Of a stretch of DNA of 64,000 nucleotides, positions 2,343-26,700 are shown in pieces. The notes beneath the pieces are model-generated. The model searched no databases. It was not told where the DNA came from and saw nothing but the letters and a program-made list of their open reading frames with translations. The stretch is from Botryllus schlosseri (Eukaryota): positions 16,492,001-16,556,000 of the forward strand of contig CM119379.1 in assembly GCA_051294905.1 (NCBI GenBank), written 5' to 3'. Both the position numbers and the translations under genes were made by a program. Numbering within the stretch: the first letter of the stretch is position 1; each line of letters begins with the position of its first letter.

Positions 2343-4531
2343 GAGTGCGTATGTCTGGACGTAATATGTCATAGCGTTCGGCTTGACATGTTTTCAGGAC
2401 ATTTCTGTGTATTCAGCTTCCACTGGAGCGCTGATAGCAATTAAAAATAACTTCAAACTTGACAGACAGTTGTTACAATTTATTACAACTGAAATAAATA
2501 TCATTTTGTTTTTTCAGCTAACGCATCATCACGTTAGAACGACACATTATAATCATTTAGCAATATTGGATAATCATATCCAATCGCTAAAGCCAATATA
2601 TAGGCTTCATTTAAACTTGTGCTGCTTCGGATCGAACTATTTCGGTCTCACATGTTCGTCTTACGAACCATAGGTGTTTGTTAAATTCTTTCCCATCCTC
2701 ATAAATATATAATGGATAAGGCAGCACATTAATTTGACAGGTTTTAACTAAATGATCTGGCTTCTTTTCGATCTGAATTTGCTGCGAATGATATCTTAAA
2801 AACATTGAAAACTATTTGTGGACAAATTTCTGATTAAATATTCATGTATGTAAAAGTTTTTGCTAAGGAATATTTAAACAACTACTCAGTGTCCAGCAGG
2901 TCATTAATATCGACGCATGCGGTCATCTATTATTATCTTATAACTTATAGTATTTATATTCAAGCCAAGATATATCCTAGCTAGGAGAACCGGGTTGACA
3001 TTTAATGGATCAAAACACTATTAACCACATTAAACGACGCAGCCAAAGCAAAGTCATACCGTAGTTGGTCTCAAATCTAAGTTAATATCAAACTGTACTT
3101 ATAGTGGCGGTGTACCACTGCACTCAGTGATGGCTAAGTAGGATGCAAGGCCTCGTGATCAAGACCGATTTTGCAGTCCGCGTACAACCAGTGCTTCCTA
3201 ATTTTTCCTACACGCCACCCTTTCCCTATTTTGGTACGCTTGACTCCCGACTCACCCCTTACCCCAATATGACGGAGAACGAAAAGATTCAGAAAACCAT
3301 AAGAAAATAGCTTGTTATTTCTCATGGCAACTTCGCGTCGAATAAGCTATGGTTGCGCTGCGACAGTCGAGTAACAGATATGAAAAAGAAGGATATTAAA
3401 ATGCGAAAGCTATAGCCTACACACGAGCTGGTGTGAATTATAGTACCTTTAATTGAGACAGGCATATAGTTACGCATCAAGAAATAAAAAATTGTTATTC
3501 CCAAGTTTACGTTTAATATGAGGTTTCCGAAAGAATCATGGGAAGTCAAATACAGAAAATTTGTTGAAGGCGTTTGCTCACAAATTGTCTTAGACAACCC
3601 AAAGCAGGTAGCCAATTCGAACTATACCAGCATTATGATGTATACTATCTCTTGCATTCTCTCACTCTTGGGATCCCATGAAAAAAGAATTTTCGTAAAC
3701 TGCGTGGAAAATTTCACGACTAAAAATATAAACCGAATGCAATTTTTCATGTTCTGAATTCTCCTTGAGAATAAATGAACTATCGATCTGCAAACCGCAA
3801 TTTACAGAAGCTAACTCGCCATTACAAAAGTGTTTCATTGTGAGATGGAAAAGTTGGTCGCACCCCGTCGTTTCAACCGATGAGAACTACAGCCCGCGGA
3901 AAGACATTATGCACGTCGGGCAAAACAGCTCAAAGCGCAACCAATTGTTTGATTACAAGCGGCGAAATTGATTAACCTTGCAATGATTTTTTTAAACTGA
4001 ATATCGAATTTTATATCCCAAAATAGGGACTCGATCCCCGCCCACTGAATGAACGGAAGAGCGTTTATACTGATTATTATAGCATACGGTTGGACATTAC
4101 TCGAGTTCCAAGAAATTGTAATGGAAACTATGATGCGGATATACAATTAGGAAAAATTTATAATTCATTTTCGTGAAATTCCACATGAAGTAACGATGAT
4201 TCCCCAGGAGAAATTCTTTCCTGTTTTGGAACCGTTGGTATACGCACCACATACAAACCAATTCTACTCGTCGGCAGAGAATTGGAACCGTAGCGACCTG
4301 GTGTACAAGGCCATAGCAACTGATCGCCATATTATAATACTAAGCACAACGAGGCAAGGCTCCGCCGATTCTGTATCACGATCTTATATTTTGATGTGAC
4401 AAGAATTGTAAGTCACGATATGGCTGAAGCTGAATCAAATATGTACGAATGAGCAATTGAGCATGAGCAATCGAGCCGTATTCAAGTGATGGCAAAGATT
4501 TTAGCATTTATATTTTATACATATATTTCAG

Positions 4532-5653
4532 GTGATGTGAGATGGCAGGGTTTTAAATGCCATAACGGTGTCGTTGGTCACGCACCCGTACAGCAATCGG
4601 CGTATTTGAAAGGCTATTGCTGCGCGGTAATGAGAGGCGCGAACATTACGGACCGCAGATACAGGTGTGTACTTGTACATTGTTTTGTACATGCAAATAC
4701 CAGAAGCTTGCATGTAGGGTACGAGGAAATGCTAGGCAGGGTTTGAAAACGATTCCTCGTTACAGTACTTTCACGCAAGCGAAAATCGGATGTAACGAAA
4801 TAGGTCATCACATATGTACGCTGGAAGAAATGTACCGGGTGTGGGATAAGGTGAGATTGTGATGTTGTTGTTTATTGAACAAAATGATTTGGCGCTTATC
4901 GCCTGACGGCCTTTTGCACCGCGGTCAATGAAATTCATATTGTAGGCCTACAACACGAAAAAAGGAGGCCGTATGAAATAACGATAAAATATCAGAATGT
5001 AGTAGAAACACTCAGGTCATAAATGGCGCTTATGTGGATTCTGTAATTTCAACCTCATCACTTCTGAGTTACGTTACGTTCATTGTTCGTATCCGCCATA
5101 AATGTAATTTTATTAGTGTCGATGGATCAAGTATTCCACCTGTTACCAGTTTTTTAAAAATGTGAAATGGGACTTTGTTCTGGTTCAAGGCTTTTTCTCA
5201 ATGGTGGCGGCATTATGACTAATATTGTGCTAAAAGCCCTTACTATATATTAGCCCTACCTGCGTCGTAGCAAACTAATCAATGCCGGTGGTCACCATTG
5301 TTAGTTGTTGGCCATAGTTAGATACCGTTATATTAATGGTTCGCAACTCATTTACCACACAATATTAAACATTATATATTATAATTTGTATCCAGTCGAG
5401 CTACAAAAGCGACATGTGGGGATGGTTTCACGACGACCGTCACCTCGTGAAGATGGTGCACAGCTGCAATCCGAACCAGCAATTGTGGCCGGGCTACCAA
5501 TGCCTCCAAGGCCGACTGGTGACTTCGGAGATTATGACGTCTAACGTCCAAGAGAGCGCTTACTGTTGCCACACAAGTTCAACGAGTTCCAATGCTCGGC
5601 TAAACAGCTATTTTGTTTTGTTTTCATTTCTTATCGCTTTCGCTATGCGTTGA
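4532..5653 (+). CDS. 3' part of a tandem Link-module-like (C-type-lectin-fold), predicted GPI-anchored protein; 5' exons unresolved
   Basis: Exons 4532-4664, 4766-4850 and 5396-5653 join with GT-AG sites and matching phases (1, 2, 0) into ...DVRWQGFKCHNGVVGHAPVQQSAYLKGYCCAVMRGANITDRRYSTFTQAKIGCNEIGHHICTLEEMYRVWDKSSYKSDMWGWFHDDRHLVKMVHSCNPNQQLWPGYQCLQGRLVTSEIMTSNVQESAYCCHTSSTSSNARLNSYFVLFSFLIAFAMR*. The pattern Y.TF..A...C...G..[LI].T..[QE][LM]Y..W...GW...C...AYC is Link-like. The C-terminus is Ser-rich then hydrophobic, like a GPI signal. Confidence 0.7.
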
Positions 5654-8600
5654 CCAAATTTGATACCCATGCTTCCTATTATTGTTTGCTGTAAAATTGC
5701 GTTTAAGTTTTTAATATTTTCACCTCGTGAGAAGATGTTGGATCGTAAATAAATTCTATATATGTGATTTATGATGGTAGCATATTCTGCTACAAACCAG
5801 GGGTGTTTAAACTCAAAGACCACCGACCGAGTACAGTAACCTAAGCCTAATAGATCTACAGCCTACACGACAAATTCTATTTCAAATCTGCCAAGTAACG
5901 CAATCGGGGATGAAAATATGACTACAAATATTGCGATATTTCAACACTAAAATTTTTGATATGCTGATATCGAATATATATTTATTATATCTGTGGATAA
6001 TTCATTGATATTTTAGACGCCTCTGAGGAGCCTCAGATTGTAGACATAATATAGAAGTATACACAAGCGGTAACAGCAATACCGTATTGCAGTAAAAAGT
6101 ATAATAATTTGGATTATTATCCACAATTGCAATGAACGCAATGATTGAAGTGTCATATTGCTATTTGGATTCCCATTTTAAATAATTCATTTTTGGATAG
6201 CCTTCTTATAGTAAGCCCTGTGTAATATTCAATAATGCCCCATGCTGTCAATTTGATTTGACAGGACCGTGCTTATCACACACACACTCTTCAGCACGTC
6301 GGCGATCCTAATGTACATACGGACACCACTAGCATAAAACATTCATATTCGAATGGTCTCACCATGAAAATGATATTTCCTTTTTTCACACGATTATGTG
6401 CAAATAAGCGTATACCGGTCGATTGCGTGGCATATAGGGTCATATCAGGTCCCAAATTCGTTCTATTCAATTATGTATAGATTATTACATCACCGTCATG
6501 AAAGCGCAACGTGACCCACACTTTTTGTAGTATATGATTGCTCGTGCCCATAAAATCAAATCCTGATTCAAGACAGCGCGATTCGCTCGGATAACTATGC
6601 CTTCTATCGCATGATTAACACCGCTGTGCCATTTCAGCCCATGTAAGCTCCTGCAAAAAGACGCTACGTAGGGAAAGTCCTTGAAGACCAAAAATATCTA
6701 CATAATGTTCACCGAGGAGAGCATTCTAAATATCAACCGGGGAAAGTGTTAGCACTGCTTAGCAGGATATGGTTTTCTGGAGTACGTCACTTGCGTTGTA
6801 GGGATGAAAATTTTTGGACCGTATGATATTCTATCATAGACGTTACGTTAGAACGTCATACATACATTGTGGCATGGACAATTTTTCAACCCGACCTTGG
6901 AAGGGTCAGAGCACCTTCACGCATGCACCAAAGTATTGGCTAAAGATTAGCATAAACAGAGCATAAGATAGGGATTGCTTGCAGGATCGGATTACGACAT
7001 TTTAATTGTTCAACGTAAGACATTTCTGGATTCTGCAGAGTAAATGGATCTTAAGGTGTCGTATATCAATATTTTATCACCATACGCTGAAAGATTCGGG
7101 CCTCGATAGCACGCCATGCCGTCCATTCTTGGCACATGAACTTAAACAATAGATTATATTATTAACCTACACCTAAAGTTGTTGGGATAGGCTACTTTCC
7201 AATCTTGAAAAAAAAAAAATAGAAAACCGGACCGGAATCTGATGATGTGCCAAAATGAAAGTTTGAGAGGGTCTATAAATTTTCACCATTGATGTTACAC
7301 AATATGTGACACCCACTGTAGAATAGAAACCTCTGGTTTGATTTCCTTAGGTTGTATCCCAAAACCCAATTGCTGACAAGCAAAACCATTACCGGTGCCG
7401 AGCCAGGTACAGGGTTGCGACAGGTTACAAAGAGTATGTTCCCTTGCTTGGCTACACAGGCAGAGCGAATGATTTTTCAAGAGTTATCAATTCGTCGAGA
7501 TGATTTTGAGCAGATGAGTCAAAATAGTCATTGTTACTACTCAAGAAGAAGTAGAACCATAAATTTTTACTCGATTAGAAGTAGAAAATGGAAGGAATGA
7601 AAAGTAGGCCTACTCAAGTAAGTTCTTTCAAATAGTAGATTTCCTCGAGAGATCGCGTACTTTTAACAGTTAACAGGGGTTGGCTATGCTATTACTATCA
7701 TAATTGCAAGATGTATCTTTGCGACTAACGCAAAATGACTATAATGACACATATACGTACGATATTCGAAAATATACGCGGTTCCAACGACGATTTCACT
7801 CGTAAGAGTTATGCAAGCCTATTCAAGAACTAATTTCTACTTTTCAAAATCCAAATTATAAAAAGCAAGTGGTAGGACTGGGCAAAATCCGTCGAGTCGA
7901 GCATCTCTCATTATGACGAGTTCAACTATATGAACCTTTTAGGCGACCACAAAGAATATAATGCAGTTCTTGATCGCATTAAAGATATACCTGTTTCATT
8001 GCAATTTGTGACAATGCCGCGGGTTGAGCAGGAGTTCACAGAAACGCCATTTCCACTAGCGTGCGAGCTGCGAAGCTTTGTACTACATGTTTCGTATGCT
8101 GTGGCCTGTGATACGACCATTCGAGGTTAAGACTTTCTTCCATTCGAATCATTGTGTCCAGCTCTATATACTCATTAGTCGATAAATTACTTATACGCCA
8201 CCGTGCAAATTGAATTTTGTAAATACGCGGTTACAACATGTCAAACCTCATATCCCACAACAAATTTAATCAGACGTAGGGAGGGATTTGCATTTGCTCT
8301 GATCGGAATACATATTTATGAAAATGGAAAAGCTTTAGCTCTGAATGTCGAGATTATAAATCGAGTTGCGGGTCCGCAGAATTTATTCCGTTTAAAGGAC
8401 CTCGTAAATATAATCATGAAGCAGGTCGATGGTTACTCGAAACTGTAATCTAAGTCTTCAGAAATACCGATTTCACCAATCACCGTTCAGATATATCGGA
8501 TTATTTTCATCAAAGACTACCTTCCCGCAACATACATGCGCTTATCTATATGATGATAAGCTTTACATTATTATATTGCCGATACCAAAAATCGATGAGG

Positions 8601-8690
8601 CGTATGGGATATGGCGCATCAAATAGACTGGCAAGTCGGTACGATACATTCGTGGCTGATTGAAGGAAAAAAAGAAAACAATTACCGGAG

Positions 8691-8792
8691 TTATATATAA
8701 CAGGTGGATCGAAAGTGTCCCGTTCATATCGTGGAAAGATCTAGAGTTTTACGGGATTGAATGCTAGAATCTTTATAGTCACATCCGCAAAG
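8691..8792 (+). promoter_or_regulatory. Candidate TATA box and non-coding first exon of the galanin-like gene
   Basis: TTATATATAA at 8691-8700 is followed by a strong donor AAAG|GTGAGA at 8793 and closed reading frames. It lies upstream of the acceptor TTTCAG at 9461. Assignment to this gene is inference. Confidence 0.3.
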
Positions 8793-9463
8793 GTGAGAAT
8801 ACTTGAAAATATCTTCGTTATTTGACATTGAATTCGGACCACCGACTGGATGTAGCCAGGATTGAAGTTTCGGGAGGGAAAGACAAATTAGGATATTCAG
8901 TGACGTATGTCCATTGTGACGTAATCAATATAAATAACGTCCCACTGGGGGTATTTGTACCATGATTTCATGACTGACCAAAAATCAATTTCCCGGACGA
9001 CATCGATATTGACAACTATATAGCTATAGTTTCCATATCGGCCCGCAAATGTTTTTTATGTTGTTTTGTGAGTCGATGTCATAATCATATATAGAGCGAG
9101 ATAAAGACAATCGCCACAATCTGTACAAGCAATGAAACAAAAGAAAAGGTCGACTTAAATGAGAATTGTTAGCGTTTAATATGGGACTCGCACACGTGAT
9201 AAAATCTAAAACCCGAATCATTAAACATAAATTAAAATCAATTCTAACCGATATTAGATAGTTTTATATTATTGGCATCAATTCATTGAATTCAATTTAT
9301 TCAGTAACTCTATGTCGTCCTCAGCGTAAATTTCTGAAAGTGTGAGCTCCATGCTATCGTGTATCTTACTAAAACCATTGCATAATGTGCTGTTTTTCGA
9401 TACCCTCCATAGAGACATTTATCGACATCGACAGACAAGGTTTTCACTTGCATTGTTTCAGAA

Positions 9464-11005
9464 ATGATCAATTCCAATATCTGTCTCGTTCTCTGCCTTG
9501 CTTTGATCGCGGAAAGCCAGCAAGCGAATCCAGAAGCGGTAAGGAATTTCATCATCCAAGTATATGCAATTACGCATTAAAGTATATTATATATAGTTGT
9601 GCTGAATATATAATCCAATCCAAGTTGTAGAATTTGTGGTCTGGTGAAGGTTGATCCCCACTAAAATCGGTATTCTCAGTAAGCAGTCGCCAAATTTATG
9701 GCCCTCTAATATTCGTTGAATTAGCGATACCAACTGTTGTAATTCGAGTTTTGTACATTTTTTTACTTTATAGGTGTTTTCCAGACTTACGTTAGGTCAT
9801 GAGTGTTTTCTTTATATACTTAATGTATATTCTGTAGTTTCTGGTATTATCGTCAAATTTAGCGCAGGTGGAACAGTTTTGCGCGGATATATATAAGCAG
9901 TGTAGGCCTAATGATAAGCCCACGTATATAAGTTTATATTCTTAAAATCAGACAAGATGACCAATTCACCACACGATGCGACGCTGTCGTGAGTAATGCG
10001 TTTCGACATCTCGGAGGGATGTCGGATCGCCCAAGAAAAACTCTTTCACAATATCTTTATTTATATCTCCAACATTGCGTGACGAAAAATGATCTAAGCT
10101 AAAGAAATGAGTGATTAATCGATGTGTGCGGTTAATTAATGATCAATATTTAATGTGATGTACGAAAAACGAAACTATTCTATTTAAATAACTTGACTTA
10201 TCTGGACAAAATGCAACATGGACAGAAACAAATCTACCTTTACACAATAAGGCTTACAGAATAAGATGTTGACAGTTTGTATAGCTGCTGATCGGAACTG
10301 AAGTTACAGTCGTTTAAAGTCCCGTCTTTGACGAATGAAATAAGTTATTCGTGAATACTTTTACAAGTTCTGGTTATACACATGTCTCTAACCTACCTAT
10401 GATTTAATTACACTATTTACACCGGGCCTGTCAAACCTCCACGCACTGCGATCCGGTTTAGGAAAAACAACTATCTGAGCTGACCAAATATGGACGTATC
10501 CCAGCGGTTCGCAAACTGTTTTGTTGACGGCGTCCTTTGATGCAAAACGTATCGCGAAGCTATTTCAGTTGGTTCGCGAAGCAGTCTTCTATCCAATCTG
10601 TCATATAAAGCTGCTTTTGGTAGTTAATAATGCCAGAAATCTTCCTATTGCCGTGACAGCAATTTTATATGTATAAATGAAATACTGACGATCTTACATT
10701 AGCCGAAAATATGTGTACCTTAATTTTAGGTATTTCTGAATATTTCCCGAGTGGGAAAATCAAGTCAATCAACGAATCAAGTCTAGACATGATAATATCT
10801 AATATATAGCTCTATCTTCGCATTGATAGTAAATTGCATGTGTACACATTACACAATGATTCCTTTCTCACTAATTTGTTTTCAATTCGTTTGTGGGAAG
10901 AGTTGGTACCGACAGATCGAGATCCCAACCCTAACCCCAAATTAGCAATGTTTGAGATTTTATTTTCAAAGTATCTGCCCCTAAATTTTGATTGACGGCG
11001 TAACG

Positions 11006-11043
<38 letters not shown>

Positions 11044-14000
11044 AAAGAGGCAATGACCAATGACAGCACTACAAAGTCACAGGTAATATGCTTGGACAAT
11101 GGACAATTGGACATGGACAAAGCAGTACCAGTTTAACGACGATGAAATATTCTAGAAGTCAATTTTTTACGCACGTATGCCCATCATTTTGACGAAGACG
11201 GAACAAAGCATGTTTCGCGGTTCTAAGCGGCCAGGGGACCGCGATCCCCAATTTTAGACGACCTAATCCGCACAATCAGTGAGCATCGCATACCATAGAC
11301 GCAACTCTCTCGTTTAGTAATCTAGAAAATATAAAAGCTAGGATAGCAAGATTAATTTTTGGCCACGCTTTATCCGATGAGATTTTAGCACATTTTAAAC
11401 ATCTATTATCTTTCCACTGTGTCGCAATCTTATGATACGAACGAACGAATTATACGTACACACTCCACATCCACGCCACGATTATTCCGTCCAATGATGA
11501 GTGATGACTTGAAGAAGACAGTGCTATATCAATTATACACACATCTATATTTTCGTCGACACCTAAAATTCAAACTTGATGCATTTCCGGTCATATGTCT
11601 CGCGTGTTTACGCGGAATTTCAATCAAATTTCTCACAGGCTCTGACGCAACAGACGATAAAGCAGGTCTAATGAATATTGAGCAGGAATTATGACTAAAC
11701 GAGTTACCAAAAAATAAGCATAGTGAATGGGGGAGCTGTCGACGGAGTATCAGATTCGTCGAGTTATACTGGTACGACATGAGAGTTAGACCAGGGAGGG
11801 AACAGATAATTTTATAGTTGTGCTTGAAACGCTACGATACGACAATAAGGAGGTAATATGATTAATTAATAAATAAACAAAGTACAGGTATTTCGTCAAA
11901 GGAGCTATATTTACCCTATATTTTAAATTGTCAATACCAATCCATTACGACGTGACAATTGAGTATTCGTGACGTCATGTCATAAAAAAAGAAACATGTT
12001 TTAAATTGATTTTTATTTTAAATGCAACCCTAAATATAATGGAAAAAGTTTACTATATCCAACGCTGCTTTCCAGCTGTGTGCGTAAACTGAAAAGTGGA
12101 CACTGGACATGAGGATTTGAAAATGGACGCTACTATAGAACATGTTCCGGTCAAGTGACCACATTAAATGGAACTCGACTCTGGAAATATACACTTTTGT
12201 TGAATTCTCCGTTGGTTGACTAAAAAAAATGGTCGACTTTCCGGCTCAACTCACGAAATACCGACCGGAACATTTGCAATTCCTATTGTTAGGTTGTGGC
12301 AGTATATAAACAGCACTTCGTTCATTTTAACACATTATAACTATGAGTGGTTATAGTGAAATAATGACGATCTATCTATGCAGTAACAATTGAATATGAG
12401 CTCATACAAGGTTGTGGCAGGGTACAATTGTGAGCATCTTGTTCAAAAAGGTTTAGCAGTGAAGTTATGCACACTAAAGTAAACAAACATCGAAAAAGTG
12501 AAGACGCTTCCTTGACAATTCGGCAATCAGTTGCGTTGGTGGGGATATCAAAAAATACTATTAGAGTCCTATATCATGTGTTACGACGGTATACAGTATC
12601 TGCTGCTAAATGGCTTGGTACCGAAAATGCTGTACAATATACTAACCTGGAGGTAGGCTATAACTGATGTAATTTTCTGCCATCTGTGCGAATTACTGCA
12701 GTATAGCGCAGCTGCAACTAATTTATTACGCAACAGATACAATATACCGTATGTTGAATGCTTTGTCTGCTTGAACCCACGACCATGTATGAACAATTGA
12801 TTTTTCGCTTAATTCGGACAAACCCGTTTCTTCGCTTAATTCGGTCAAAATTGAGGGGAACCAAACTGCCCGAATTATGCGTTGTCTACTGTACTTTCTA
12901 GAGATTTCTCGACATATTCGGGAATGCTAAGACGACAACATGATGGGGAACATTAAAAAGAGAGATAAATCATACATATATTTGCAAGAGCTATACTGCA
13001 CTATAATTTCAAATACCGTAGTTATTTTAGTATGCCTATATTTCAGAATGACAGATTACGGCGTCCGTTTAGAAATGGATGGTCCATGAACAGCATCGCT
13101 TATAACGCGGGAATCGGTGAGCATTCTTACACAAGATTTGATTTCGCTGGTCTTGCGTATGCTGGTCAATACAGAATGTTGTATTGATGCCGGTAGATGG
13201 CCGATTTACATACAATTTGTCTGGTGATATGGAAAGCATATAGAAAGCACTCTTGCCGCCAAGAATTATCACCGGGAAACATATACGGCGTTGCTCCAAA
13301 TTAGTATTCCCTAAAAGTACCACCGAGACTACAATCTCTGTCGCACGAGTAGGCAATCTATATGCATATATATTTGTCATGCAGTGTTGACTCCGCTGCA
13401 TTTAACGTCGTCCACGTAATCTAAAATCATACGTGGTAGAACCAATATTCTGGCAGACAGTGACGCACGGGATCTTTCTTGCCACCTTACGGTATACCTT
13501 TAGCGATAGACTTTAGATTCGTGGGCTCCAAGTAGTGACAGTAAAGCCGGGTAGACGCCCGCCGTCAGCAAATGTGCTTAATCTACGCGAATGTTTTGAG
13601 TAACAACGCATCTTTAATGGAGGCATATCAAAAATTCGAATGTATATTGCGCTAATTCGTTGAATAAGTAATGTGCTACGTACATTTACTGACTTTTCTG
13701 CAACTCGATCTACGCACACAATTTGCAGATGCCCTCAAGAAGCTGCTTTCGGAGAAAAAACGAAGTGACCCGACAGGTATGTCACTCGATCGCATTGTGT
13801 GTATACCGTTACTACACAATCCAATACTAATTGACGCATTGTGCCCCTATACAATTCGGTCGATGGTTAAAAAAATTGAAGATCACTTCCGTTTTCCGAT
13901 TCGGTAGCTCGGTCAAAGCGATATCAGATAAGTTTCATGCGCATGACGAACCCGAATTTATGGTGCTTTTTACCTTAAAATAGTATATTCTAAGTATTGT

Positions 14001-14867
14001 GAGGTCATAGTAATTAGGCTTGTCCGGGGAAATGCTTTCCAGTTTGACAGCACAGTGAATCCGAATGATTTTGTTTGTTTGAACTTTTTGCAGATGATTT
14101 TCCCGCTCCGAATCGTTTTGGAGACGAAAAAATCAACAACCTCCTCGACGACTTTGTCTTGTTTTTAAAACTGAAGGGTAATATTGATAATTTTATATTT
14201 TAAATTATAGCCTTCGCATACATTCGGAATCGGTGTGGGTCGATGCGTGCCAGTGTGCTTATTAAAAGCTACTAATTATTCGACCCGTGCCAAAAAGCCA
14301 CTGACACCATGCCTTTTAGTATCATTAGAAGACAGCGTCGACGAGTTTTTTTTTTCAAAAAATAGGTTACATATCAGGGGAGACCAACGCGTGGCCCGCG
14401 CGGTATTTGTATTTTTCACAATAACTTAGGGGTTTGTAATTCATGGCGAAATAACAACACCCTTTAACAGAGTCATTGATAACAACGCTCAGCTAACACG
14501 CGAGAACCTATAATAGTTGCAAAAGTAGCAATATTATTGACAACATTCGTTCAATGACTGTAAAGAAAATTCGCGTTTCGCGCGGTTAGACTAGACTAGA
14601 ATGCAAAACAAATGCACACCATTTCATAACATAATACTGGAAATTTTGGTAAGTCGAATCGCACTTACTTTGCTCCGTAAACTGCGCGCGTGTATGTGTG
14701 AATAGTTGTAGTGATGAAATTACCCGCAGAGGCAAACGGGAGTCCGGGGGACGTCCCGTAGAATTTAGATTGATCACGATCACTCTATTGGTGGGACGAG
14801 ACCATTTATGGGTTGCTGATAGAGTGCTGTAACAGTCCTAGTTATATCAGACATCCGTTTCTAAGAT

Positions 14868-14904
<37 letters not shown>

Positions 14905-15463
14905 CCCGCATCCATCGAGGTGCTTTTGACGATGGCGATAGGGTCGAACCTTACAGTAAGGTTAATGCGTAACTCCGTCTCCTCTATGCTATCTCGGAAA
15001 TTGAGCGCCAAGATACCAACTTTCCGTTTCGGCCCTTAGCCTGACCCGGTCGGGGATGGAACCCACGACATATGAATCATGAAGCCCGACGCTTCACCAT
15101 CTCAACAATAAACACTCAACAATCATTTGCGAATCGAATGTGGCCCTTCGACCAAAACGTTGGACAACACTGTCGTGTATCAAGGATAGTTATATGTGTG
15201 ACGTGATTAACTACATCACACAGGACTTCTATTGGGTACGCCCGGACGAACTGTGCATAGGACATTTCTTCAAATAGATGTAGCTTCATGAAATTGTACC
15301 AAGACCAACAGGTCTCGATATATCTCTAAAGATTCGGTGGTATGGTGCAGACTCGTGGAATTATACTGTATTACAATTCTCTACCGTTACAGACAGTCAA
15401 TTGTTCGAGCCTTCGCTTCTCAACTGCATCAGATCTGAGATGTCAGAAATTACAGAAGATTGA
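9464..15463 (+). CDS. GALP: Galanin-like peptide precursor (preprogalanin / Ci-GALP ortholog), about 115 aa, five coding exons
   Basis: Exons 9464-9538, 13047-13116, 13729-13776, 14094-14177 and 15393-15463, all GT-AG with compatible phases (0, 1, 1, 1), give MINSNICLVLCLALIAESQQANPEANDRLRR-PFRNGWSMNSIAYNAGIDALKKLLSE-KKR-SDPTDDFPAPNRFGDEKINNLLDDFVLFLKLKDSQLFEPSLLNCIRSEMSEITED*. It has a signal peptide, dibasic sites, and a peptide aligning with Ci-GALP (PFRGQGGWTLNSVGYNAGLGALRKLFE, from memory). AATAAA occurs at 15554 and 15570. The last exon is less certain than the middle three. Confidence 0.88.
11009..11040. repeat. (GA)16 microsatellite
   Basis: Read directly; lies in an intron of the galanin-like gene. 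Confidence 0.95.
11881..12032 (+). mobile_element. Partial (right-end) copy of the 1921-2342 MITE
   Basis: tatttcgtcaaaggagctatatttaccctat...ttttaaatgcaacccta matches 2151-2342. Confidence 0.85.
14871..15106 (-). mobile_element. tRNA-derived SINE with a (TC)16 tail
   Basis: The minus strand reads GTTGAGATGGTGAAGCGTCGGGCTTC..GTCGTGGGTTCCATCCCCGACCGGGTCAG (A/B-box-like head), then the core ttggcgctcaatttccgagatagcatagagg shared with the other SINEs, and ends in the (GA)16 at 14871-14902. Confidence 0.7.
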
Positions 15464-16833
15464 AACGATGTCCATATAATGAGTTATTTTATCCTCCAAA
15501 CTTTCTGTACCCATAGAGTGCCGTAAACATATTCCTGTATGAAGATGTGCTATAATAAAGGATTTCGCGAATAAAATCTATTCAATACAAGATCAAATGA
15601 TATTCCTATTTCGTCGCATACCCGTGATCTGACGATGTCTTGGTCAAGGCTGCGTGAAGTGGTCAGGGACAAATCGTTGACTTGAAGTGGCATATTTCAT
15701 AATCTTATCGCATCTTCAACAAGGCATATCATCGACACAAACAAATATAATGGCGACCAAAGATTATTTTAAACGAGCTAATTTCATCTGCAGTGAACAA
15801 CACAGGTCAACTAAGCAAGACTTCCAGGGGCCCCCTATAAGTATGCAGTCGCAGCCCCCCCCCCCCAGACTCCCTTTTCGTATCTGTTATCACCACCTTA
15901 ATAGTAGTGCGCCATTTAGAACGGAATTACGTGATGTGTATATGACACGGCTTTAAAGCAGGCTATTCACTGTTGAATTGCTCTAGTGCTCTAGCTTCTG
16001 CGTCTTCTTTTATCATACATTGTCAAATTATAAAAGAAGTGACTCGGTTAACTATAATTCATGTGTTCATGTATGGCAGGTAGCGTGAAATAATAGAATA
16101 GCGATACAACTGCTGCAGGCTAAATAGGTAACACTAATCTGGACACTGTGGACAGCTATCGGCTGACATTACTAATAAGCCAGCACACCACGTCAAGGTT
16201 TGAGCCAGGCTCTGGATTAGGCCATATCTATTATTGAATGATTGCAAGGATAGACTACATCAAAACTATACCTCTACCGCATACAGAGACTTGATGATTA
16301 TCGGGTTAAGGGACTTTTCTACCAAATGCATAGATTTGATGATTGACCCATCTGTGCGGAATCATTGGTTCACAGATTTCCACGTATATTCGCTATGATC
16401 CTTGAAAAGGGCGCTTAAACCAAAGAGGGGGAGCTTTGAGCAGGGGGCTCGGACGACCGCCCATCTCGCCCACACCAAAAGCGATCACTGCCCAGTGCTC
16501 ATTACCCATTCTTTTATAAGTGATATTACTGTATCTCTTCAATTCGATGAGGATTGGCAGTCTATACAGACGTGACATGTGCGGGTTAGAGGCGCAACAG
16601 CGCCCGCCAACGTGCGACGACTTCGCATTTGGGCAAATTTCGTCAAATCAATTCAAATAACGTCGGTTTGTCTGGAGATTTCACAGGTTGGCACTGTTTA
16701 AAATTGAAGAGCTTATTGGAAGTACAGAACTTCGTTATTCAATTGAATAATATTCATTCATTCATTGTGGCTACGTGGAAAAAGAACGACACAACTTTTG
16801 CAGGACCGCATAAAGCAGCATATCCCTATAGAC

Positions 16834-17638: not shown

Positions 17639-19892
17639 CTATAGACATATTAGAATACCCGAATCACGCTTGGAGAACAGTTCGAACTTGACTCATCCCC
17701 GAAGCTTGAATCTGAACAGGCAAAGACCATGAATCCTACCATTGGCACACAGCATTTGTTCGATAATTCTGTTTGTACGAAAAATTATCGAGACCACAGA
17801 ATTCGCGTTGTCGGAAGAGGCCATCTAGCTCACACTTTCATTTGTGTGCCTGAGAGTCGACTTTTATCAAGATCCGCCAACCTGTTTAGTGCCAACAGAA
17901 GCAATAAATGTATCTTCTAAATTAGCACATTGATGAGCTTTGGCGATCTCGAGTATCATAAGTATATTTGTATGCCGCGATCCGTAGACCACGGACTCGC
18001 TGTATACCCCCACTGGATATTGGACAAGTCAAACGTTCTATATGGTTATAAGGTATATTATACGTATGGTATATAACCGTTTACTTTTCAAGGCACTGGC
18101 GAGCGCCGGGGCTCCTGATTTGGAGTCAGATTCCCCGAGAATAAGATTCGATAATATATAAATCCTAAATTGTTAAATGATTCTATTGACGACTAGCTTA
18201 TATTCCTTAGCACAGTCCTCATAGACAGGCTACGTAACAAGCTCCTATACGCATCTGATATTGAATATGAGTATAAAAATACACAATACCTACATCAACT
18301 GTTTGCTCAGCACTTTGTTGGCCGTGACAACTTCACTATTCGTAAAATACATCCAGTTCGCAATATATTATACTTGAACAAATGTGTACACCTTCAACAG
18401 CAAACGGTTTGCGTTGGGTGGAGTGTGTGAATTGAAAACGAAACATATTTATCGACTTGAAGCAGAGCATGAGATACCGTTAAACTTATGTAAAGCCAAG
18501 TCGCGGCTTCGGCTACTGGTGGACAGTGGACAGCACACAGGCGCAACTATCGCATTAACAACGTAAATCGAACGGTGACAACGGTGTTCGTGAAATCAAG
18601 TTCAAACTGATTCAAAACAGTCATTTTGGAATACTTTTGTGTATTCACATTTCTCTACAATTGCGCTTACGCAACTTTTATTATATAGTTTCAGCATCCC
18701 TTCATATGCTTTTCTCCGTATCGGAAGACAAAACGGGGTCACATGAGTTTATTATTCGGCCACGTCTGAAAAGGGCTGCCGACCACTGCTATACATTGGT
18801 GGATAGTACGGCGAACATGGCCGTTTCGATATCCGCTAATGTGTTCATCACATGGCATATTGTACGTACCCGTCGTACATTCATTGCGTATCGTTTGCAA
18901 ATAAAAAAATACTAGCGCCGGTGGTTTATCAGCACTTAACCGCGGCATGTGAAAAATATTTCCGATTGGGATAGCTGTCATCGCAACTCACCCGTGCTGC
19001 TACTCAGATACTCTAGGAACAGTGATATCTCCTTACTACGACTTACGATACACGCTGCGAGAGTATAATAATTTGTTTGGATCTGCGATCAAAGAAACCC
19101 GCGAATGTTGAGAAAAATGTAGAATTATAGATTTTATGCCTGTGCTCGGAGCTTGACTCGCAGCTGTATACACTCATTTGGGATAAAATCAGGCTTAACA
19201 GATTAACATCGTACACAACAGCGTGTTTACACTGTTAGGACAACCATAAGACTTGACAATGAGTCGAAGGTCAAATCTGAAAGCCAAGTCAGGAACGCGA
19301 CTCGCAGATGAAATCTCAAAAGGCAACAGGAATTAGTCGATAGAGCCGACGGTTTACCACACACGTTCACGTTCAGTTTACTAGGTCTATCGGTGGAAAA
19401 CATGTACATTATTCCACAGGGACATGGTAGGTAATCTAATAGAATGTAGCAAAGTTCACCCTTACATATACACATTACACAGCGTCCTTTCATCACGCAT
19501 GCCATCGCTTTATTGTTGCGGAAACAAAATACAAACACAAGATGAATTGTATGCCTAGATCAGGCAAATGTCTGTGAACTCGGGGCATGAAAAAATAAGA
19601 AAAAATCGACGCGATTGATATCAATCTTCGGGTGTTAGTGTTGGCACCATCCCTCAAACCAGTCCGATACCAATTCTTAGCAAATAGAAGCAAAATAGCA
19701 TTCACAAAACGCTTCAGCACCACGGACCAAATAAATGGGTACCTTACATAAGAGATTTCACCGAAGTTGGCCGACGATAGTACGATGAAGCCAGCCATCA
19801 AATTATACTGCAGTACCGTTGTGATTCTACGGAGTGCCACTACTATGAGGCTTTTATGATAATACTGAGATTATAGAAAAAGCGATATATTT

Positions 19893-21323
19893 TCAAGCTG
19901 CGATACTGCATTTTTCCGCGACTGCGGCGATCAGCGCCGCGCCTTTACCGCTTCCGTCGAAGGACAGCATGAAGTTGACAGTAATTCCGTGGTCTTCGGT
20001 AAGAAGGGCTACTTTCTCGGACATCTTCGCAGCAAAAGTGGGATGCTTTTTGTACACTGTCCCATCCACCCCGACGGTTATCGTCATGTTGCTTTTGTCG
20101 GGATGATTCGCTTTGATTTTGCGGGCGATAGCGGCCACGCCGGCCGCGCAAAGATACGCGGATCTGGTAGAGACCGCGTCGCATATGTAGTGTACATTTT
20201 CGCAATCGTCGCGCGTGGCGCCGAGTTCGAGATCGAACAGGATGCTTTGTATTTCGTGAAAGCCATTCTTCACGTTGCTTTGTATTTGGGAAACCAGATC
20301 GGTGCCGAACTTACCTTTAGACCGTAGCTCTTCTGATGTCTCGCCGTTGAACAAGACCTTTTCTTCTGCCAGCTTCACCAAGACCCGCCGAACTATTTCT
20401 CCCATGTACATACCGCTCATCATCTTCTCGTACACTTGTTTACCGGGATTTATTGAATTCTTGTCGATGACAATATCGTATTTGTTTCTGATGTCATCCA
20501 AAATACCATCGTCCCCAAAAGCCCCCCACTCTGTATTGACGCACATTTCGCCTTCATTGGAGTCTAGACTGTGTATGTTTTCCATATTCTCCATGTAACA
20601 ACAATTGGTGCCAGTGCCAATGATCAAGCCGGCTTCACAATCTGGCGCTTCATACGCACAACTCATTAGCGTGCCTACAGTGTCGTTGACCACTGCCGAC
20701 ACTGAAACTTTCATACCTCCATGCCTATCGATGGCATCGCGAAGCATTTGTACTACATCTCTGTCAACAACACCGGCGCAATTGAAGCCTTTCGTCCATG
20801 ATATTAGAGTAGCCTTATCGATCCCGTGCTGTCTGAGCGGAAACGAGAAGGTAAAACCTATTGACATACGGCGCTCAAGGATGTCTAATCGCTCAAGAAA
20901 CTGGTAGATGCAATTTGCGATGTGGTCGAAAAGCTGTTCCCCGTGTCCGGTCATGATGCTTTTTGGTACCCTATAAATCTGACTGTCCATCTCAGGACGC
21001 TCGTTAGCCTTGAGCGTGACGTGCAACACTCTGAAGTTTGTACCGCCCAAGTCTAACGCCAAAAACGACCCCTCTTCAGATCCGTCAGGCTTCGATTTTA
21101 CATAGGTGGGTAACATTTTCAAAGGAGGTTCTTTGTCAGTGTTTTTGGCCAGGCCCTGCGACATGCTCTCTAGCATCCTGGACGTTATCGATTCTAGTTG
21201 CTCATCTGAGAGGTAGAAGTCGCTTAAAGCATCCGCTAAGTAGTACAGTATTGATGGGGTTCGCACCAGAGTGCCCCTACGCCTCAGTCTTGGTTTTTCG
21301 GAGCCCGACATCTCTATATTCAT
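19893..21323 (-). CDS. HK: Single-domain (about 50 kDa) hexokinase, intronless, 476 aa
   Basis: Uninterrupted ORF with hexokinase motifs LALDLGGTNFRV, GFTFSFP, VVNDTVGT, IIGTGTN, EKMMSGMY and DGSGKGAAL. Confidence 0.95.
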   Translation of the reverse strand: MNIEMSGSEKPRLRRRGTLVRTPSILYYLADALSDFYLSDEQLESITSRMLESMSQGLAKNTDKEPPLKMLPTYVKSKPDGSEEGSFLALDLGGTNFRVLHVTLKANERPEMDSQIYRVPKSIMTGHGEQLFDHIANCIYQFLERLDILERRMSIGFTFSFPLRQHGIDKATLISWTKGFNCAGVVDRDVVQMLRDAIDRHGGMKVSVSAVVNDTVGTLMSCAYEAPDCEAGLIIGTGTNCCYMENMENIHSLDSNEGEMCVNTEWGAFGDDGILDDIRNKYDIVIDKNSINPGKQVYEKMMSGMYMGEIVRRVLVKLAEEKVLFNGETSEELRSKGKFGTDLVSQIQSNVKNGFHEIQSILFDLELGATRDDCENVHYICDAVSTRSAYLCAAGVAAIARKIKANHPDKSNMTITVGVDGTVYKKHPTFAAKMSEKVALLTEDHGITVNFMLSFDGSGKGAALIAAVAEKCSIAA

Positions 21324-23719
21324 CTGCAGCCTGCTACAAACCTGGCAGCAGAATAGGCGATGTCGAAGTGCAACGGCGGCAATCGTTGATTCGTTTGCTT
21401 GAAGGAATTTCTCAACAAGCTAAATAATACAGCGCTAAAACTCAACTTCCCATCTCAGGAACGAGAGATTAGCTAAAGTTTACGTCCGAATTATTTATGG
21501 CTTCTGTCTTCTGTGCAATCTCTGTTTAGCACACCATATGTGCCGTGGCATTCTAGTGTAGTGACATACGCCTCTTGATACCGCCTACATTTCCGCCTAT
21601 TTTCAACAGTACAACAGTACGGGGAATGACATAATCTTATCGCGAGCTCTGCGCGGATTTATGACGGAATTCCTTGAACTTGTTGAACGAAAAATAACAT
21701 CGTAACTGCGATTCTTGTTCCAACACCGGAGGTCACAGAGTACAGACAAGCAGTAGCAAAGCCAGTCGCTTGCAGCCACAGTGGCTGTACGAGCGTAATT
21801 TGTGAATCATCGCCACTTGGACCAGCTTTTTCTACTTCAAATCGCAGCGTGCGACTAAACGATTGTGATTTACGATATACGCTCGAATCGTGATTGTCAC
21901 TATATTTGGAACGTTGCCAGTTAAATTTCCGAAGTAGGTGTACACATTGGGTCATATTTCTTCTCTCAGCATCGTGCGCACGTCCGGCTTCTGAGGTTTT
22001 CGGTTGAGTCACATCGTACGAATGCCCGATATCATGTGACTTGCGCGTAGCCGCCGGCTTGTGATGGAAGTACGCCTATTTATTGCTTATTCACGATTGT
22101 GTAGTGTTGGCCTATATGTAGGCCTGGATGTATGATTGTATCGTTCACGGTTTCTCACGACTCTTCCAGAAATAGGTGATTTCAAAACAATTGAAATTGC
22201 ACGTTGCCCAGTTCGGGGATGAATTGCGGGTAAGCCGCGCGAAAAATATAATGTAGGTATAGGTTTTAAACATACGAGTATAATATGAACGTTGCATCGT
22301 CCATTTCTCGTTTTCTAACCAGATCGCCAACGATCGCTCTTTGCTCAAAAGGCGGAATAATACAATAACCACTAGGCTACAACTACTCCATAGAAACTAT
22401 ATCACCTACTTCAGTGGTTACCTTATTACAGGACGTGACCAATGATCACTGTGGCGCATGAAAATAACACCAAGACATATCGAAAGGAATTTTTTGTCCA
22501 CAATAGCATCCATATAAATTTGGTCAGACAACCCCTCTTTAACGCCAGCCTCGAAAAAAAAACACTTCTGAATCACGCGATTACGATTACACAGAAAAGT
22601 AACAACGATTATTCGTGAGTCGAGATTATATAGGCCTACATTTTGCTTCCTTGAACTTGAGCCTTTAACGCATACTCGAAAATTATACTACTACGTTGAA
22701 TACTATTTACCGACCACGTGTGGGTAATTCTTTACGCAATGGCATGCATAGCAAATACCTGTGATGTGTAACAATGAGCGGCAGTGAATATCCTAAGTTG
22801 GTACTTTCTCGATACAACGCACCATTCCTTGTTCACAAATGTGCAGTTTATGACAAAAGTTGAAGTAAAGAAGTTCAGTAATCGTTTTTTACAAAGAAAT
22901 CAATCAGATATGTAAAAGATTAAGACCAAGCTGGATTTTTTCGAATTTATTTCATTACAATTACAATTACTTGGAAATGATTACGAGTACAGATCAGTAT
23001 ACTTCATGTCTTGCTCTTGACGTATCAATTACTAGGGTAACTAGTCTGGCGCTTTAGTAACGAGAAACGCACTGTAATATATAAATGTTCAAAACGGAAA
23101 TTTAGGGCGCGAAACTGCACTATCCTCACCTTTTAGCTGCTAAACTGTCTCATTTGGTTCAAACCTATCGTACCCAACCGTGAAGCGCATTTTCAAGTCG
23201 CTAAGACGAATTAGTCTACAACCCATTATCCAACCTTACTGAAATTGGTTCGACATCAATTATATATTACCAACGATTGAATCATTCAATCTCACATTAT
23301 GAAAACGGATTTATTGCACTTTCACATGTATTCAATTACTTCTATCGTGTCGACATTATCAACTCATCAACCAACAGAGAGGACAGCATTAATTAGTCAT
23401 CGATGTAAGCATGTAATGGGCGGTTACACCATATTGATGTAGACCAGATTCGGCATCTCACAGTGTAGCTGTCTCAATACTAAAATCTTCAACCATAATA
23501 TAACATTGGAGTTGCTAACTGATCGTTGTTCTCTACTAAAATACCTTGAAAAACAACCTGATCGCGTTCTGATGGAATCACTTTGCGCGAAAGCTGATAA
23601 TTCCTGATCGTTTTCTTCCTCGATCGCAAACGCCGAGATGCAATCCCTTCAGTGCTGTCCATCATAGACTTGAGAAATGTCAATCAACAATGACATGGTC
23701 ACTGACAAATCAGGATCCG

Positions 23720-26700
23720 CTAAGACTTCGCCAAATATTCCTGCCATTCATCGTTTGCTGGCGGAGAAGGCTCGACCCAACCAGTCGGAATCCTGCATCC
23801 TGCTTGACTGATGAAGCAGTCCCATTGCGCCCTGAATTACAAGCCAATTGCATCCAAGTTTGAGAGTTTGAGCTATAACATTTAATTAGGTCTTCACCAT
23901 GAAATGATGGATATGAAGTGTAGCATATAAAGTAAAACCCGACCACCATCCCCGGGTAAACGGATAGGGTTGTAGCAGGAAGGGCGTGTGACATAGAATT
24001 TCAGCCATATCACTGAGCACTGTAACATTGTAACAATCCCGCATTCGAAAGAAGCCGAAAGATCCCCCTCCCTCTCTCTAATCTTGACATCAGTAAGGAC
24101 TGGATTTTGTTTCGGTTGACAGAAATTCAGTAAATCAATTCGGTCTGGATTAATCAGTTGTTCTATTATATTACTGTTGCCAGTGATTTGTCTGTTATGG
24201 GGAGGAATGTCTTCTACTATACGTTGATAGCGTAATACTTCCGGTCAGAAATTGAAACACGGCATTCTTACCTCATGCCAATCAAGCTCACAATATTTTT
24301 CATTCCTTGCTGTTGAATCTCTCTTGCCGGCCACAGTGTGTCCGACGGCTCCAGCTCAGCTGGAAAAAAAGAGATCGCACTGAACCGTCATTATCTATGT
24401 CTCTCAGAAGGTTTTGTTCTTCACAAACTGATTAAACAGTCGGCAAGACGTGCTTAACGCTTGGACATAGACCCGACGCGTTGATCAGTACAGCCAGAAG
24501 TGGACAATGTGGTTGGCGTTGCTACTCAATGACAAGTAGAAGTAGCAATTTCCGAGAGATGTGAAAGTTTCTTCAAGTGGAAGTAGATAATAGAAGGTCT
24601 GGCAAGCACTCAAGTAGTTTCATAAAGTAGATTTAGACGAGGGGTCACATACTTCAAGCAGGTAGTCGGAGGTGGCTAATTTTGAAATCGTAAGATATAT
24701 CTTCGCAAGTCACACAAAATAACACTTGAAATAGATAGAATCGTTGAAAATATATAATCGCGTAATCAGTTAACGTGTTTCACCCAGTTACAATGTCACT
24801 CATATAAGTGGTGTAAACATATCCCAAAACTATTCCTAACTTTTTGAATGCCGAATGGTAAAAAGTAAGCAGTTTTGTCTAAAACCTGCTCAAGCAGAAG
24901 TGGAAACAGTTTAAAAACATAACACTCGAGTACTAAGTAGTGTAAGCAGGTAAAACCCACTTGTGTACTCCGAAAAGTTATAAGTACTTCATTATTGACC
25001 CCCTGTGTGTAGCAATTTTACTTTTACAGCTCATTATTCAAGTGATATAAGCATAATACCAGCCAGTGACGCCAGTGGAGGAGTTAACAACTTGAAACAC
25101 TATACTTCTAGCTCTGAGTCGTTATCTGCCACACTGATCTTTGACCACATACAAGACAGTGTAACGGTGAAGCATCCGGCTTCCTAATCGGCAGGTTGTG
25201 GGTTCGATTCCCGGCCGGGTCAGACCAAAGACCTGACCAGTAAACCTGTTATCTGTTGCTTCCTCGCATAGCGCTCAGCATTTCCGGGATAGCATGGAGG
25301 GGTGGGTGTACGAATTAGAAAGCCTTACAAGGTTATATCTGCACCTTCCTTGTCCAGCGTCATATGCATATCCTGCACTCATGGTATGCATATGTACAGA
25401 TAGTGCGTACGTATATCATTAGTCGTTGTATAGTATATGCCGCAAAAACAAAACATATAACGCCCAATATTCCCGCAACAATACACAAACACACCTTCAT
25501 TGCCGAACAGTACACACGATCTCTCATTCTTCCATTCGCGAATCTTTTGTTCCTTGCACTTTCTCGATCGATCACGGATTTTTTTCTCTTCCGCCCGATG
25601 TTCCTCGGTTCGATATTTCCTCATGAAACTCTCCTCACGTTTACAAGTCGAAATAAATTCCCTAAGCTTGTCGCTCGAAGCCTTGCGAGCCGACTTGAAA
25701 ACGTCGTCGTGGGCTTCGGAAGGCGGCGACCGTCCCTTTCTGATGACCGCGACGTGTCGAGCTTTGCGTAGTTTCGCAACGGCTTCAAACAGATCGAGGT
25801 ATTTTTTGGCTTTATGCTGCTTCTGCCGAATGTCCGACAGGTATTCGTCGAGGTCTTTTTGAACTTTTTTCTCCTAGGTGGTAGGGAAACATGTTAGAGT
25901 GTCACGGAATGAAACGTGTTTCATAATCGAAAATTTACGGAGACACTTTCTCCACGTCATATCTGTCTACACAGAGCTAGTCAAAGTAGTTGGCTACTCG
26001 ATACAAGTGAAGCCGTAATTTCTAATCACTTACACGTAGAAGTCACAATTTCAAGAATATGTGAAGATCGACAAATGACATGACAACTATGACAACCATG
26101 ATACAGAGATCTTTCACCCAGTTCTCATGTCAATTTCGCTGAAAAAATTCATGCAAGCACACCCAAAAGTGGTTTTGCCTAATAATTGCCAAATAGAGAT
26201 GGCAGTAGCCTAACACATAACCATATGAGTAAGTAGTACAAGCAGATCAAACCTATTCGATTACCGTACACAGAAAAAGAAGAAGTACTGCATTATTTTA
26301 CACACTGCATCTACATAGTATTCAAAATTGCATTGCAGATATATAAAAAATCACATATCATTTCAGTAATTCGTGGACTTGGAGGGGATGAAATTCATGC
26401 TAACAACGAGTCAAATTGAATTGACCATGAAAACGCCCCCCCCCCCCCAATGTATAATTACAGGAATTTCCAGCTGATACCGATATATATCGAAACCTCA
26501 ATAATGCTAGATTAATCCGTCCAAATTAGTTCATACCCTTTTCGAGTCCTCTTCCACCTTTCTCCGTTCTTCCAGCCATTTATCAATCCGTGAGTGCTCC
26601 TCTCTGATCTTGATGTTGCGTTCCATTATTTTATTTAATGCTTCTTGCTTTTTTGCTTTCACCCTAATTCGTTTTTTTCTCCTCTTCTCCAACTTAGCAG

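Follow-up and report, generated by a model that had tools for sequence, protein, structure and literature searches.

A six-exon gene for a probable galanin/GALP-family neuropeptide precursor in the ascidian Botryllus schlosseri

We analyzed a 64-kb stretch of the B. schlosseri genome (64,000 nt, hereafter referred to as the window) and found on its plus strand a gene of ~6.9 kb with one non-coding and five coding exons. The coding exons are 75, 70, 48, 84 and 71 nt long (9464-9538 to 15393-15463), have canonical GT donors and AG acceptors at every border, and join into a coding sequence of 348 nt that encodes 115 amino acids followed by TGA; their positions, lengths and reading frame are those proposed in the initial annotation. 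Exon 2 (9462..9538, +) holds 2 nt of 5' UTR, the ATG at 9464 and 25 codons for a predicted signal peptide, MINSNICLVLCLALIAESQQANPEA, and is followed by a phase-0 intron. Exon 3 (13047..13116, +) encodes the putative cleavage site NDRLRR, a PFRN extension and a galanin-like core of 13 residues, GWSMNSIAYNAGI, and ends in phase 1. Exon 4 (13729..13776, +) encodes the second half of the predicted peptide (DALKKLLSE), a KKR site and the first residues of the associated peptide, exon 5 (14094..14177, +) an acidic linker and a GMAP-like helix, KINNLLDDFVLFLKLK, and the coding part of exon 6 (15393..15463, +) the last residues of the associated peptide, DSQLFEPSLLNCIRSEMSEITED, and the stop codon. 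The 3' UTR (15464..15595, +) contains AATAAA signals at 15554 and 15570, and its end is not mapped exactly. Because the ORFs that host these exons span only 20-51 aa, the exons are unseen at the default threshold of 60 aa, which agrees with their reported absence from the ORF track. A scan of positions 8000-16500 against Rfam gave no match.

Transcripts of the gene are spliced to give an mRNA that codes for the 115-aa protein. All four coding junctions were present in RNA from four independent studies, and single RNA contigs of 508 nt (X27) and 448 nt (X30) span the four together. These two contigs and 6 raw reads of X6 carry the 9538>13047 joint, while the 13116>13729 joint, on which the initial annotation had staked its model, was found in two contigs and 4 X6 reads. 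The 13776>14094 joint was seen in two contigs and 7 X6 reads, and the 14177>15393 joint in three contigs, including one from X28, and 4 X6 reads. Four more X6 reads show a separate joint, 14177>15395, with 'AT' between its two sides, which we read as a synonymous C>T at 15394 in reads of the 14177>15393 joint. In the RNA runs, 79-86% of the sampled words of 15393-15595 were present; the introns were silent apart from repeats, and coverage of the gene was low. The runs differed from the window at three sites, two of them synonymous, and carried a C>A allele at 13743 that changes Leu54 to Met (L54M).

The RNA also revealed the non-coding first exon. Contigs and reads of X27, X30 and X6 have loose ends at 9460 (11 reads, median 58 nt), the consensus of which has a unique match in the window at 8767-8790, and splicing connects the exon end at 8792 with the 9461|9462 acceptor. 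With this 5' UTR exon (8733..8792, +) upstream of the five coding exons, the gene has six exons in total. Its 3' end is fixed at 8792 (CAAAG|gtgaga) and its start is left loose, the exon being at least ~60 nt and possibly ~90 nt long; it contains a uORF of five codons whose first base is 8761, and a TATA-like motif occurs at 8692. We considered trans-splicing of a spliced leader to the acceptor that precedes the ATG and rejected it, since the letters upstream of the joint match window positions 8767-8790, which indicates ordinary cis-splicing.

The reading frame encodes, in order, a hydrophobic N-terminus (the predicted signal peptide), RLRR, PFRNGWSMNSIAYNAGIDALKKLLSE, KKR and an acidic peptide of 55 aa, exactly the plan of signal, RR, 26-mer, KKR and associated peptide that had been described from the genomic letters. 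The N-terminus contains a hydrophobic core of 11 residues (ICLVLCLALIA), which by eye and by alignment occupies the same place as the hydrophobic stretch of the homologues. This N-terminus would direct the precursor into the secretory pathway, where prohormone convertases would be expected to cut after RLRR and at KKR, and a carboxypeptidase would then remove the basic residues. The predicted product is a non-amidated peptide of 26 residues, PFRNGWSMNSIAYNAGIDALKKLLSE, with a mass of ~2896 Da. Its GW-x-x-NS-x-x-Y core would be the part that engages the receptor, as in galanin with galanin receptors, and by analogy with Ci-GALP the 26-mer may signal through the GALP receptor of this species in the neural complex; we infer both the mature 26-mer and its receptor. 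In the AlphaFold model of the precursor (mean pLDDT 63), a helix is predicted in the exon 5 region (pLDDT ~80). A conserved amphipathic helix, the counterpart of vertebrate GMAP, may lie within the 55-aa acidic peptide, which could be a co-released peptide or a sorting or folding module.

The same gene might instead yield a different mature product, because residues 21-22 of the peptide (KK) form a formal dibasic site at which cleavage would release a 20-mer, PFRNGWSMNSIAYNAGIDAL, with or without N-terminal trimming. However, Ci-GALP has RK at the same position and yet is described as an intact 27-mer, and the ALxKL segment is conserved across ascidians, which suggests that this segment belongs to the active peptide. 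We therefore regard the shorter product as unlikely and retain the 26-mer as the predicted peptide.

We assign the locus, with a probability of about 90%, to the galanin/GALP family of neuropeptide precursor genes, as an orthologue of Ciona Ci-GALP and of the Styela clava 'galanin peptides-like' gene. By alignment, homology to ascidian galanin-like peptide precursors covers the whole length of the protein. A phmmer search of 1.84 billion representative proteins returned Styela clava as the best match (E 1.3e-14), followed by Ciona GALP (E 4e-10) and sequences from Phallusia, Clavelina and C. savignyi (6e-8 to 6e-6); pairwise BLASTP gave E 7e-26 for the Styela precursor. The similarity to the Ci-GALP precursor anticipated by the initial annotation was also borne out (45% identity over 80 residues, BLASTP E 6e-21). 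Two other proteins in the 1.84-billion search, one of 3597 aa and an ankyrin-repeat protein of 1622 aa, were rejected as artefacts that scored through several short repeated matches only. The pattern G-W-x-x-N-S-x-x-Y-N-x-G-x-x-A is present between the basic sites RLRR and KKR. In an alignment of eight ascidian sequences, every invariant position of the peptide is retained (G, W, N, S, Y, N, G and A), as are those of the GMAP-like helix (F..F..S), and the exon 5 region lines up with the motif DFVxFLKLKESG found in other ascidians. Conservation reaches 59% in the peptide and 35% in the GMAP-like core, which stand out as two islands from the 10-16% elsewhere.

Gene structure and genomic context point in the same direction. 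Exact exon maps place the introns of the window gene, Styela and Ciona at the same alignment columns and in the same phases (0, 1, 1, 1). In addition, exons of a Link-domain gene that adjoins the Styela GALP gene match window positions 4522-5635 (E 2e-27, 7e-24 and 1e-10). This microsynteny rests on a single neighbour in a different orientation, the Link-domain gene being upstream and on the same strand here but downstream and convergent in Styela, and the Ciona locus has no neighbour in common with the window. The matching introns and the neighbour shared with Styela support orthology and, together with the Ci-GALP alignment, uphold the galanin/GALP identity first suggested for the gene.

No other member of the ascidian set has a peptide core as divergent as this one, which shows 57% identity to the others against a mean of 76% and differs from the ascidian consensus by four conservative substitutions (T>S, L>M, V>I and G>A). 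This divergence would fit a lineage-specific paralogue, with a canonical gene of the GWTLNS type elsewhere in the genome, as would the multiple GALP-like genes of Clavelina (two or three on one contig) and C. savignyi (two models). However, the locus shares its neighbour gene with Styela clava and has nearly the same exon sizes, and a six-frame motif scan found only the exon 3 copy of the galanin-like motif in the 64-kb window, so that a diverging paralogue is even less probable than the shorter peptide. It is highly improbable that the gene is transcribed but non-functional, decaying or non-coding, as the low RNA coverage and the four core substitutions might suggest, since the frame is intact over five exons with canonical splice sites throughout, all alignment-invariant residues are retained, the substitutions are conservative and two of the three differences between RNA and window are synonymous. 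Orthology with Ci-GALP and the Styela gene thus remains the preferred reading.

Public protein sets for this ascidian seem to lack the precursor. Among ~15 billion public proteins none was at least 50% identical to it, which is consistent with the suggestion that automated pipelines had missed the gene. The only match to the window protein in a word-indexed protein search was a read-through ORF across exon 4; the family profile in this type of search recovered tunicate-type sequences only (at E 1), and the Clavelina protein recovered only its own paralogue. A literature search on Botryllus and galanin, or on the letters of the peptide, found no description of this peptide. The proposal that the gene represents an undescribed system was nevertheless overstated: the peptide family and its receptor have been published for Ciona, and annotated GALP orthologues exist for Styela, Phallusia and Clavelina. 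Since Ci-GALP and its receptor were already known, our finding fills an annotation gap and does not add a new kind of system. The gene model, now verified through RNA support for its junctions and extended by a 5' UTR exon, is that of a neuropeptide precursor of a type whose small exons are routinely lost in automated annotation, and it provides a concrete peptide for synthesis and mass spectrometry.

At the sequence level, the direct link to vertebrate galanin is weak. The window protein matched no Pfam family at E 10, Galanin (PF01296) and GMAP (PF06540) included, and a phmmer search of PDB sequences with the 26-mer gave only chance matches to PPR-repeat proteins and no galanin, so the vertebrate link is indirect. 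Nine of 10 ascidian homologues scored 7-14 bits against the Pfam Galanin model (cut-off 20.5) and five of these nine scored 12-18 bits against GMAP (cut-off 25), all below threshold, with the Galanin match upstream of the GMAP match wherever both models scored; the tenth homologue scored on neither. The best PDB matches of the family profile were galanin-derived (E 0.05-0.24), and among named Atlas clusters those of vertebrate galanin peptides lie nearest to the Styela homologue. Foldseek against Swiss-Prot models gave E > 1 throughout, with zebrafish 'Galanin peptides' at rank 4 (25% identity over 79 residues, not significant).

The preprogalanin layout of six exons, with an intron after core residue 13 and a GMAP-like helix, is common to three ascidian lineages and human GAL, an argument for one galanin-type gene in the ancestor that tunicates and vertebrates share. 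The GMAP-like module, DFVxFLKLK-E/D-S..L....L.C, forms the second island of constraint, and because module and exon borders are kept from ascidians to vertebrates, it could be a functional product with a role that predates vertebrates, either as a co-released bioactive peptide or as an essential sorting or folding helix. As a separate matter, the divergent features of the B. schlosseri core (S3, M4, I7, A8, the short extension and the segregating L54M) might reflect a shift in receptor selectivity. These readings are possible but doubtful.

Among the closest known systems is Ci-GALP of Ciona intestinalis (type A / robusta; NP_001265894.1), whose peptide, PFRGQGGWTLNSVGYNAGLGALRKLFE, activates the Ciona galanin-receptor orthologue KH.C3.660 with an EC50 of 1.29 nM (PMC6475428). 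The two precursors share a predicted signal peptide, a basic site, a PFR-extended GW..NS..YNAG..AL.KL..E peptide, a second basic site and an acidic peptide that contains one Cys and a DF..FL..K helix. Ci-GALP had been given as an amide in the initial annotation, which is incorrect: the published peptide carries no amide, and neither the Ciona precursor (...KLFE-KR) nor that of B. schlosseri has a Gly amidation donor. Compared with Ci-GALP, the B. schlosseri peptide has an N-terminal extension that is shorter by two residues (PFRN vs PFRGQG), a GWSMNSIAY rather than a GWTLNSVGY core and one additional residue at its C-terminal end (LLSE), and its cleavage sites are RLRR and KKR rather than KR and KR. 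Peptide and receptor have been shown for Ciona only. The predicted Styela clava protein (XP_039257031.2) is encoded by coding exons of 75/76/42/90/71 nt, compared with 75/70/48/84/71 nt here, and its gene likewise has an acceptor a few bases ahead of the ATG. The peptides of the two species have GW(T/S)MNSI in common; that of Styela ends in ...KLFG-KR and is therefore probably amidated, unlike ...LLSE-KKR in B. schlosseri.

Vertebrate GAL and the B. schlosseri gene both have six exons, with a non-coding exon 1 and a signal-peptide exon whose first bases lie just upstream of the ATG. In human GAL, too, the first exon is non-coding and an intron follows core residue 13 (PMC12749109, PMC9367524). 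The intron between core residues 13 and 14 thus has the same position in both genes, and both carry the associated peptide on their last exons. At the protein level, vertebrate galanin and the B. schlosseri peptide share the GW.xNS..Y...G core, and the associated peptide at the C-terminus of both precursors has an (E/D)F..FL.LK(E/D) helix. Galanin begins with GW immediately behind KR, and in most species it is amidated, whereas the B. schlosseri peptide has an N-terminal extension of four residues and no amide. Vertebrate GALP is 60 aa long, and its precursor is not known to have a recognisable GMAP. Like the B. schlosseri gene, however, vertebrate GALP has six exons and an N-terminal extension before the galanin core inside the mature peptide, and the gene in ascidians is probably best regarded as a relative of GAL and GALP alike.

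The galanin-like peptide (GALP) precursor gene lies on the + strand and spans ~6.9 kb, with five coding exons preceded by a non-coding one. As read from the sequence, the coding exons are located at 9464-9538 (75 nt), 13047-13116 (70 nt), 13729-13776 (48 nt), 14094-14177 (84 nt) and 15393-15463 (71 nt), corresponding to exons 2-6 of the gene. They are bordered by polypyrimidine-AG acceptors and GT donors and splice into a 348-nt frame of 115 codons with a TGA stop, and polyadenylation signals occur at 15554 and 15570. The encoded precursor has a hydrophobic N-terminus (MINSNICLVLCLALIAESQQANPEA), followed in order by NDRLRR, PFRNGWSMNSIAYNAGIDALKKLLSE, KKR and an acidic C-terminal peptide of 55 residues (pI 4.1). 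Re-reading the sequence bore out the exon coordinates, lengths and translation proposed in the initial annotation, as well as its remark that these exons are absent from the ORF track: the enclosing ORFs reach only 20-51 aa, below the minimum of 60 aa usually set for such a track.

That this five-exon frame is more than chance is decided by the RNA junctions. We searched public runs with the last GALP exon and its 3' UTR as the query, which were present in same-organism RNA runs from several studies, and mapped three of these runs onto 9440-15439, along with raw reads from a bulk RNA-seq run of 2026 (X6). Two introns carry long (GA)n microsatellites (10996-11041 and 14874-14901), which were treated as repeats and skipped in the mapping. 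A 508-nt contig from run X27 spans 9538>13047, 13116>13729, 13776>14094 and 14177>15393; the same four junctions are spanned by a 448-nt contig from run X30, and the last by a contig from a third study (X28). Raw X6 reads crossed the four junctions 6, 4, 7 and 4 times, respectively, and we read four additional reads at the last junction as carrying a synonymous C>T at 15394. The 13116>13729 joint, on which the initial annotation had made its proposal depend, was thus found in the X27 and X30 contigs and in four X6 reads. Given that intron depth was zero outside repeats, these data reflect spliced RNA, not contaminating DNA. The gene is transcribed and spliced, and its frame is intact and secretory-precursor-like. 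At 13743, the C of the window is replaced by A in both covering contigs (X27 and X30) and 6 of 11 X6 reads, changing Leu54 to Met within the predicted mature peptide (ALKKLLSE to ALKKMLSE); this is variation among individuals or strains, and the remaining exon differences between RNA and window, at 13103 and 15394, are synonymous.

Reads and contigs starting at the acceptor before the ATG extend upstream with letters absent from the intron. Addition of a spliced leader was ruled out as their source, as these letters have a unique match in the window at 8767-8790, indicating cis-splicing. This match and the donor there (CAAAG|gtgaga) identify the sixth, non-coding exon, which ends at 8792 and is spliced to 9462, two bases ahead of the start codon. 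A TATA-like motif lies at 8692, and the exon contains a 5-codon uORF at 8761-8778 (ATG and four codons, then TAG). Separately, all RNA runs covered a short element within the first coding intron (11881-12031) at very high depth, its word depth reaching 1420 versus about 10-25 for the GALP exons. It has a second copy at 2151-2342 and a fragment at 1921-1963, its flanking letters differ between contigs, and no Rfam family matches it; it resembles a dispersed repeat present in numerous transcripts, and it does not belong to the GALP mRNA.

We further compared the pro-protein with 1.84 billion representative proteins using phmmer, and recovered Styela clava XP_039257031 ('galanin peptides-like'; 45% identity, E = 1.3e-14), the Ciona galanin-like peptide (4e-10), the Phallusia mammillata 'galp galanin-like peptide precursor' (6e-8), and Clavelina lepadiformis proteins and a Ciona savignyi model (1e-7 to 6e-6). 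Two giant matches, one of them an ankyrin-repeat protein (P0007), scored only via several short repeated matches and were dismissed as artefacts. Pairwise BLASTP over 80-87 residues gave 7e-26 against Styela and 6e-21 against Ciona NP_001265894, the precursor of Ci-GALP (the published Ciona peptide), similarity to which the initial annotation had named as a check; its galanin/GALP assignment was right. The family has duplicated in some ascidians: a single 26.5-Mb record of Clavelina lepadiformis carries two or three GALP-like models (P0006, P0008, P0016), and Ciona savignyi is represented by two (P0010, P0019). Within the 64-kb window, no second GALP-like exon was found. The ascidian alignment contains two conserved islands, namely the peptide (invariant G, W, N, S, Y, N, G, A; mean pairwise identity 59%) and a C-terminal DFVxFLKLK(E/D)S...L..C segment (35%), versus 10-16% for signal, linker and tail. 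Both islands are predicted by AlphaFold to be helical, and in the C-terminal one the pLDDT is near 80.

Orthology was also examined by mapping exons exactly in the Styela and Ciona GALP loci and comparing them on the protein alignment. The coding exons measure 75/76/42/90/71 nt in Styela versus 75/70/48/84/71 nt in the window, and the matching Ciona exons 76/45/78/80 nt; the four coding introns occupy equivalent positions in all three (phases 0, 1, 1, 1), and Styela likewise has an acceptor a few bases ahead of the ATG. Next to GALP, Styela carries a gene for a protein of 1001 aa that shows faint Link-domain matches, and the exons of this gene (18382-26608, - strand of the Styela locus) match window 4522-5635 (+; E = 2e-27, 7e-24 and 1e-10). 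A Link-module (Xlink) gene with 55-69% identity to this neighbour lies upstream of GALP in the window; the neighbour is conserved, although its orientation relative to GALP differs between the two loci.

Publications on Ciona already describe the GALP family, its peptide and its receptor, and existing annotations include orthologues from Styela, Phallusia and Clavelina; what is new here is the Botryllus schlosseri member. A collection of ~15 billion proteins held no protein at least 50% identical to the window precursor. The only related entry there, P0001, is an 80-aa ORF on a short Logan contig of another sample (SRR25569784), representing a diverged copy of exon 5 (the fourth coding exon) read through into the intron. 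It is 84% identical over the exon and similar in the intron translation, and it probably derives from either a divergent haplotype or an organism closely related to Botryllus schlosseri. Our literature search found neither the peptide's letters nor a description of a Botryllus galanin-like peptide. The gene is real and was correctly assigned. It adds an unexceptional new member to an established neuropeptide family and is of use in annotation and for comparison between species.

Functional evidence for ascidian GALP comes only from Ciona, where Ci-GALP activates a receptor grouping with vertebrate galanin receptors (EC50 1.29 nM; PMC6475428) and where its location in the cerebral ganglion has been mapped (PMC12441681). 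Most likely, the putative Botryllus signal peptide would be removed, convertases would cut after RLRR and at KKR, basic residues would be trimmed off, and the released 26-residue free-acid peptide would act on the species' galanin-type receptor. No Gly precedes KKR, hence the predicted peptide is not amidated; the Ciona precursor likewise lacks a Gly donor (KLFE-KR), and the '-amide' given to Ci-GALP in the initial annotation was wrong. Cleavage at an internal KK could in principle yield a 20-mer, yet Ciona has RK at this position and its literature peptide is the intact 27-mer.

At the sequence level, the link to vertebrate galanin is weak and indirect. No Pfam model matched the window protein, a PDB search with the 26-mer did not find galanin, and a Foldseek search was uninformative on this relation. 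Among ten ascidian homologues scanned, nine gave Pfam Galanin scores and five of these also gave GMAP scores (galanin's C-terminal associated peptide in vertebrates) downstream of the Galanin match, all below cut-off. The best PDB matches of a family profile were transportan (galanin 1-12) and human galanin (E = 0.05-0.24), and the named ESM Atlas clusters nearest the Styela homologue were vertebrate 'galanin peptides'. Stronger than any of this is the evidence from gene structure. The human GAL gene comprises six exons, the first of them non-coding; its exon 3/4 border separates residues 13 and 14 of galanin, and its last two exons encode GMAP (PMC9367524, PMC12749109). The window gene shares this plan, its exon 3 ending right after GWSMNSIAYNAGI, 13 residues counting from the Gly of GW.
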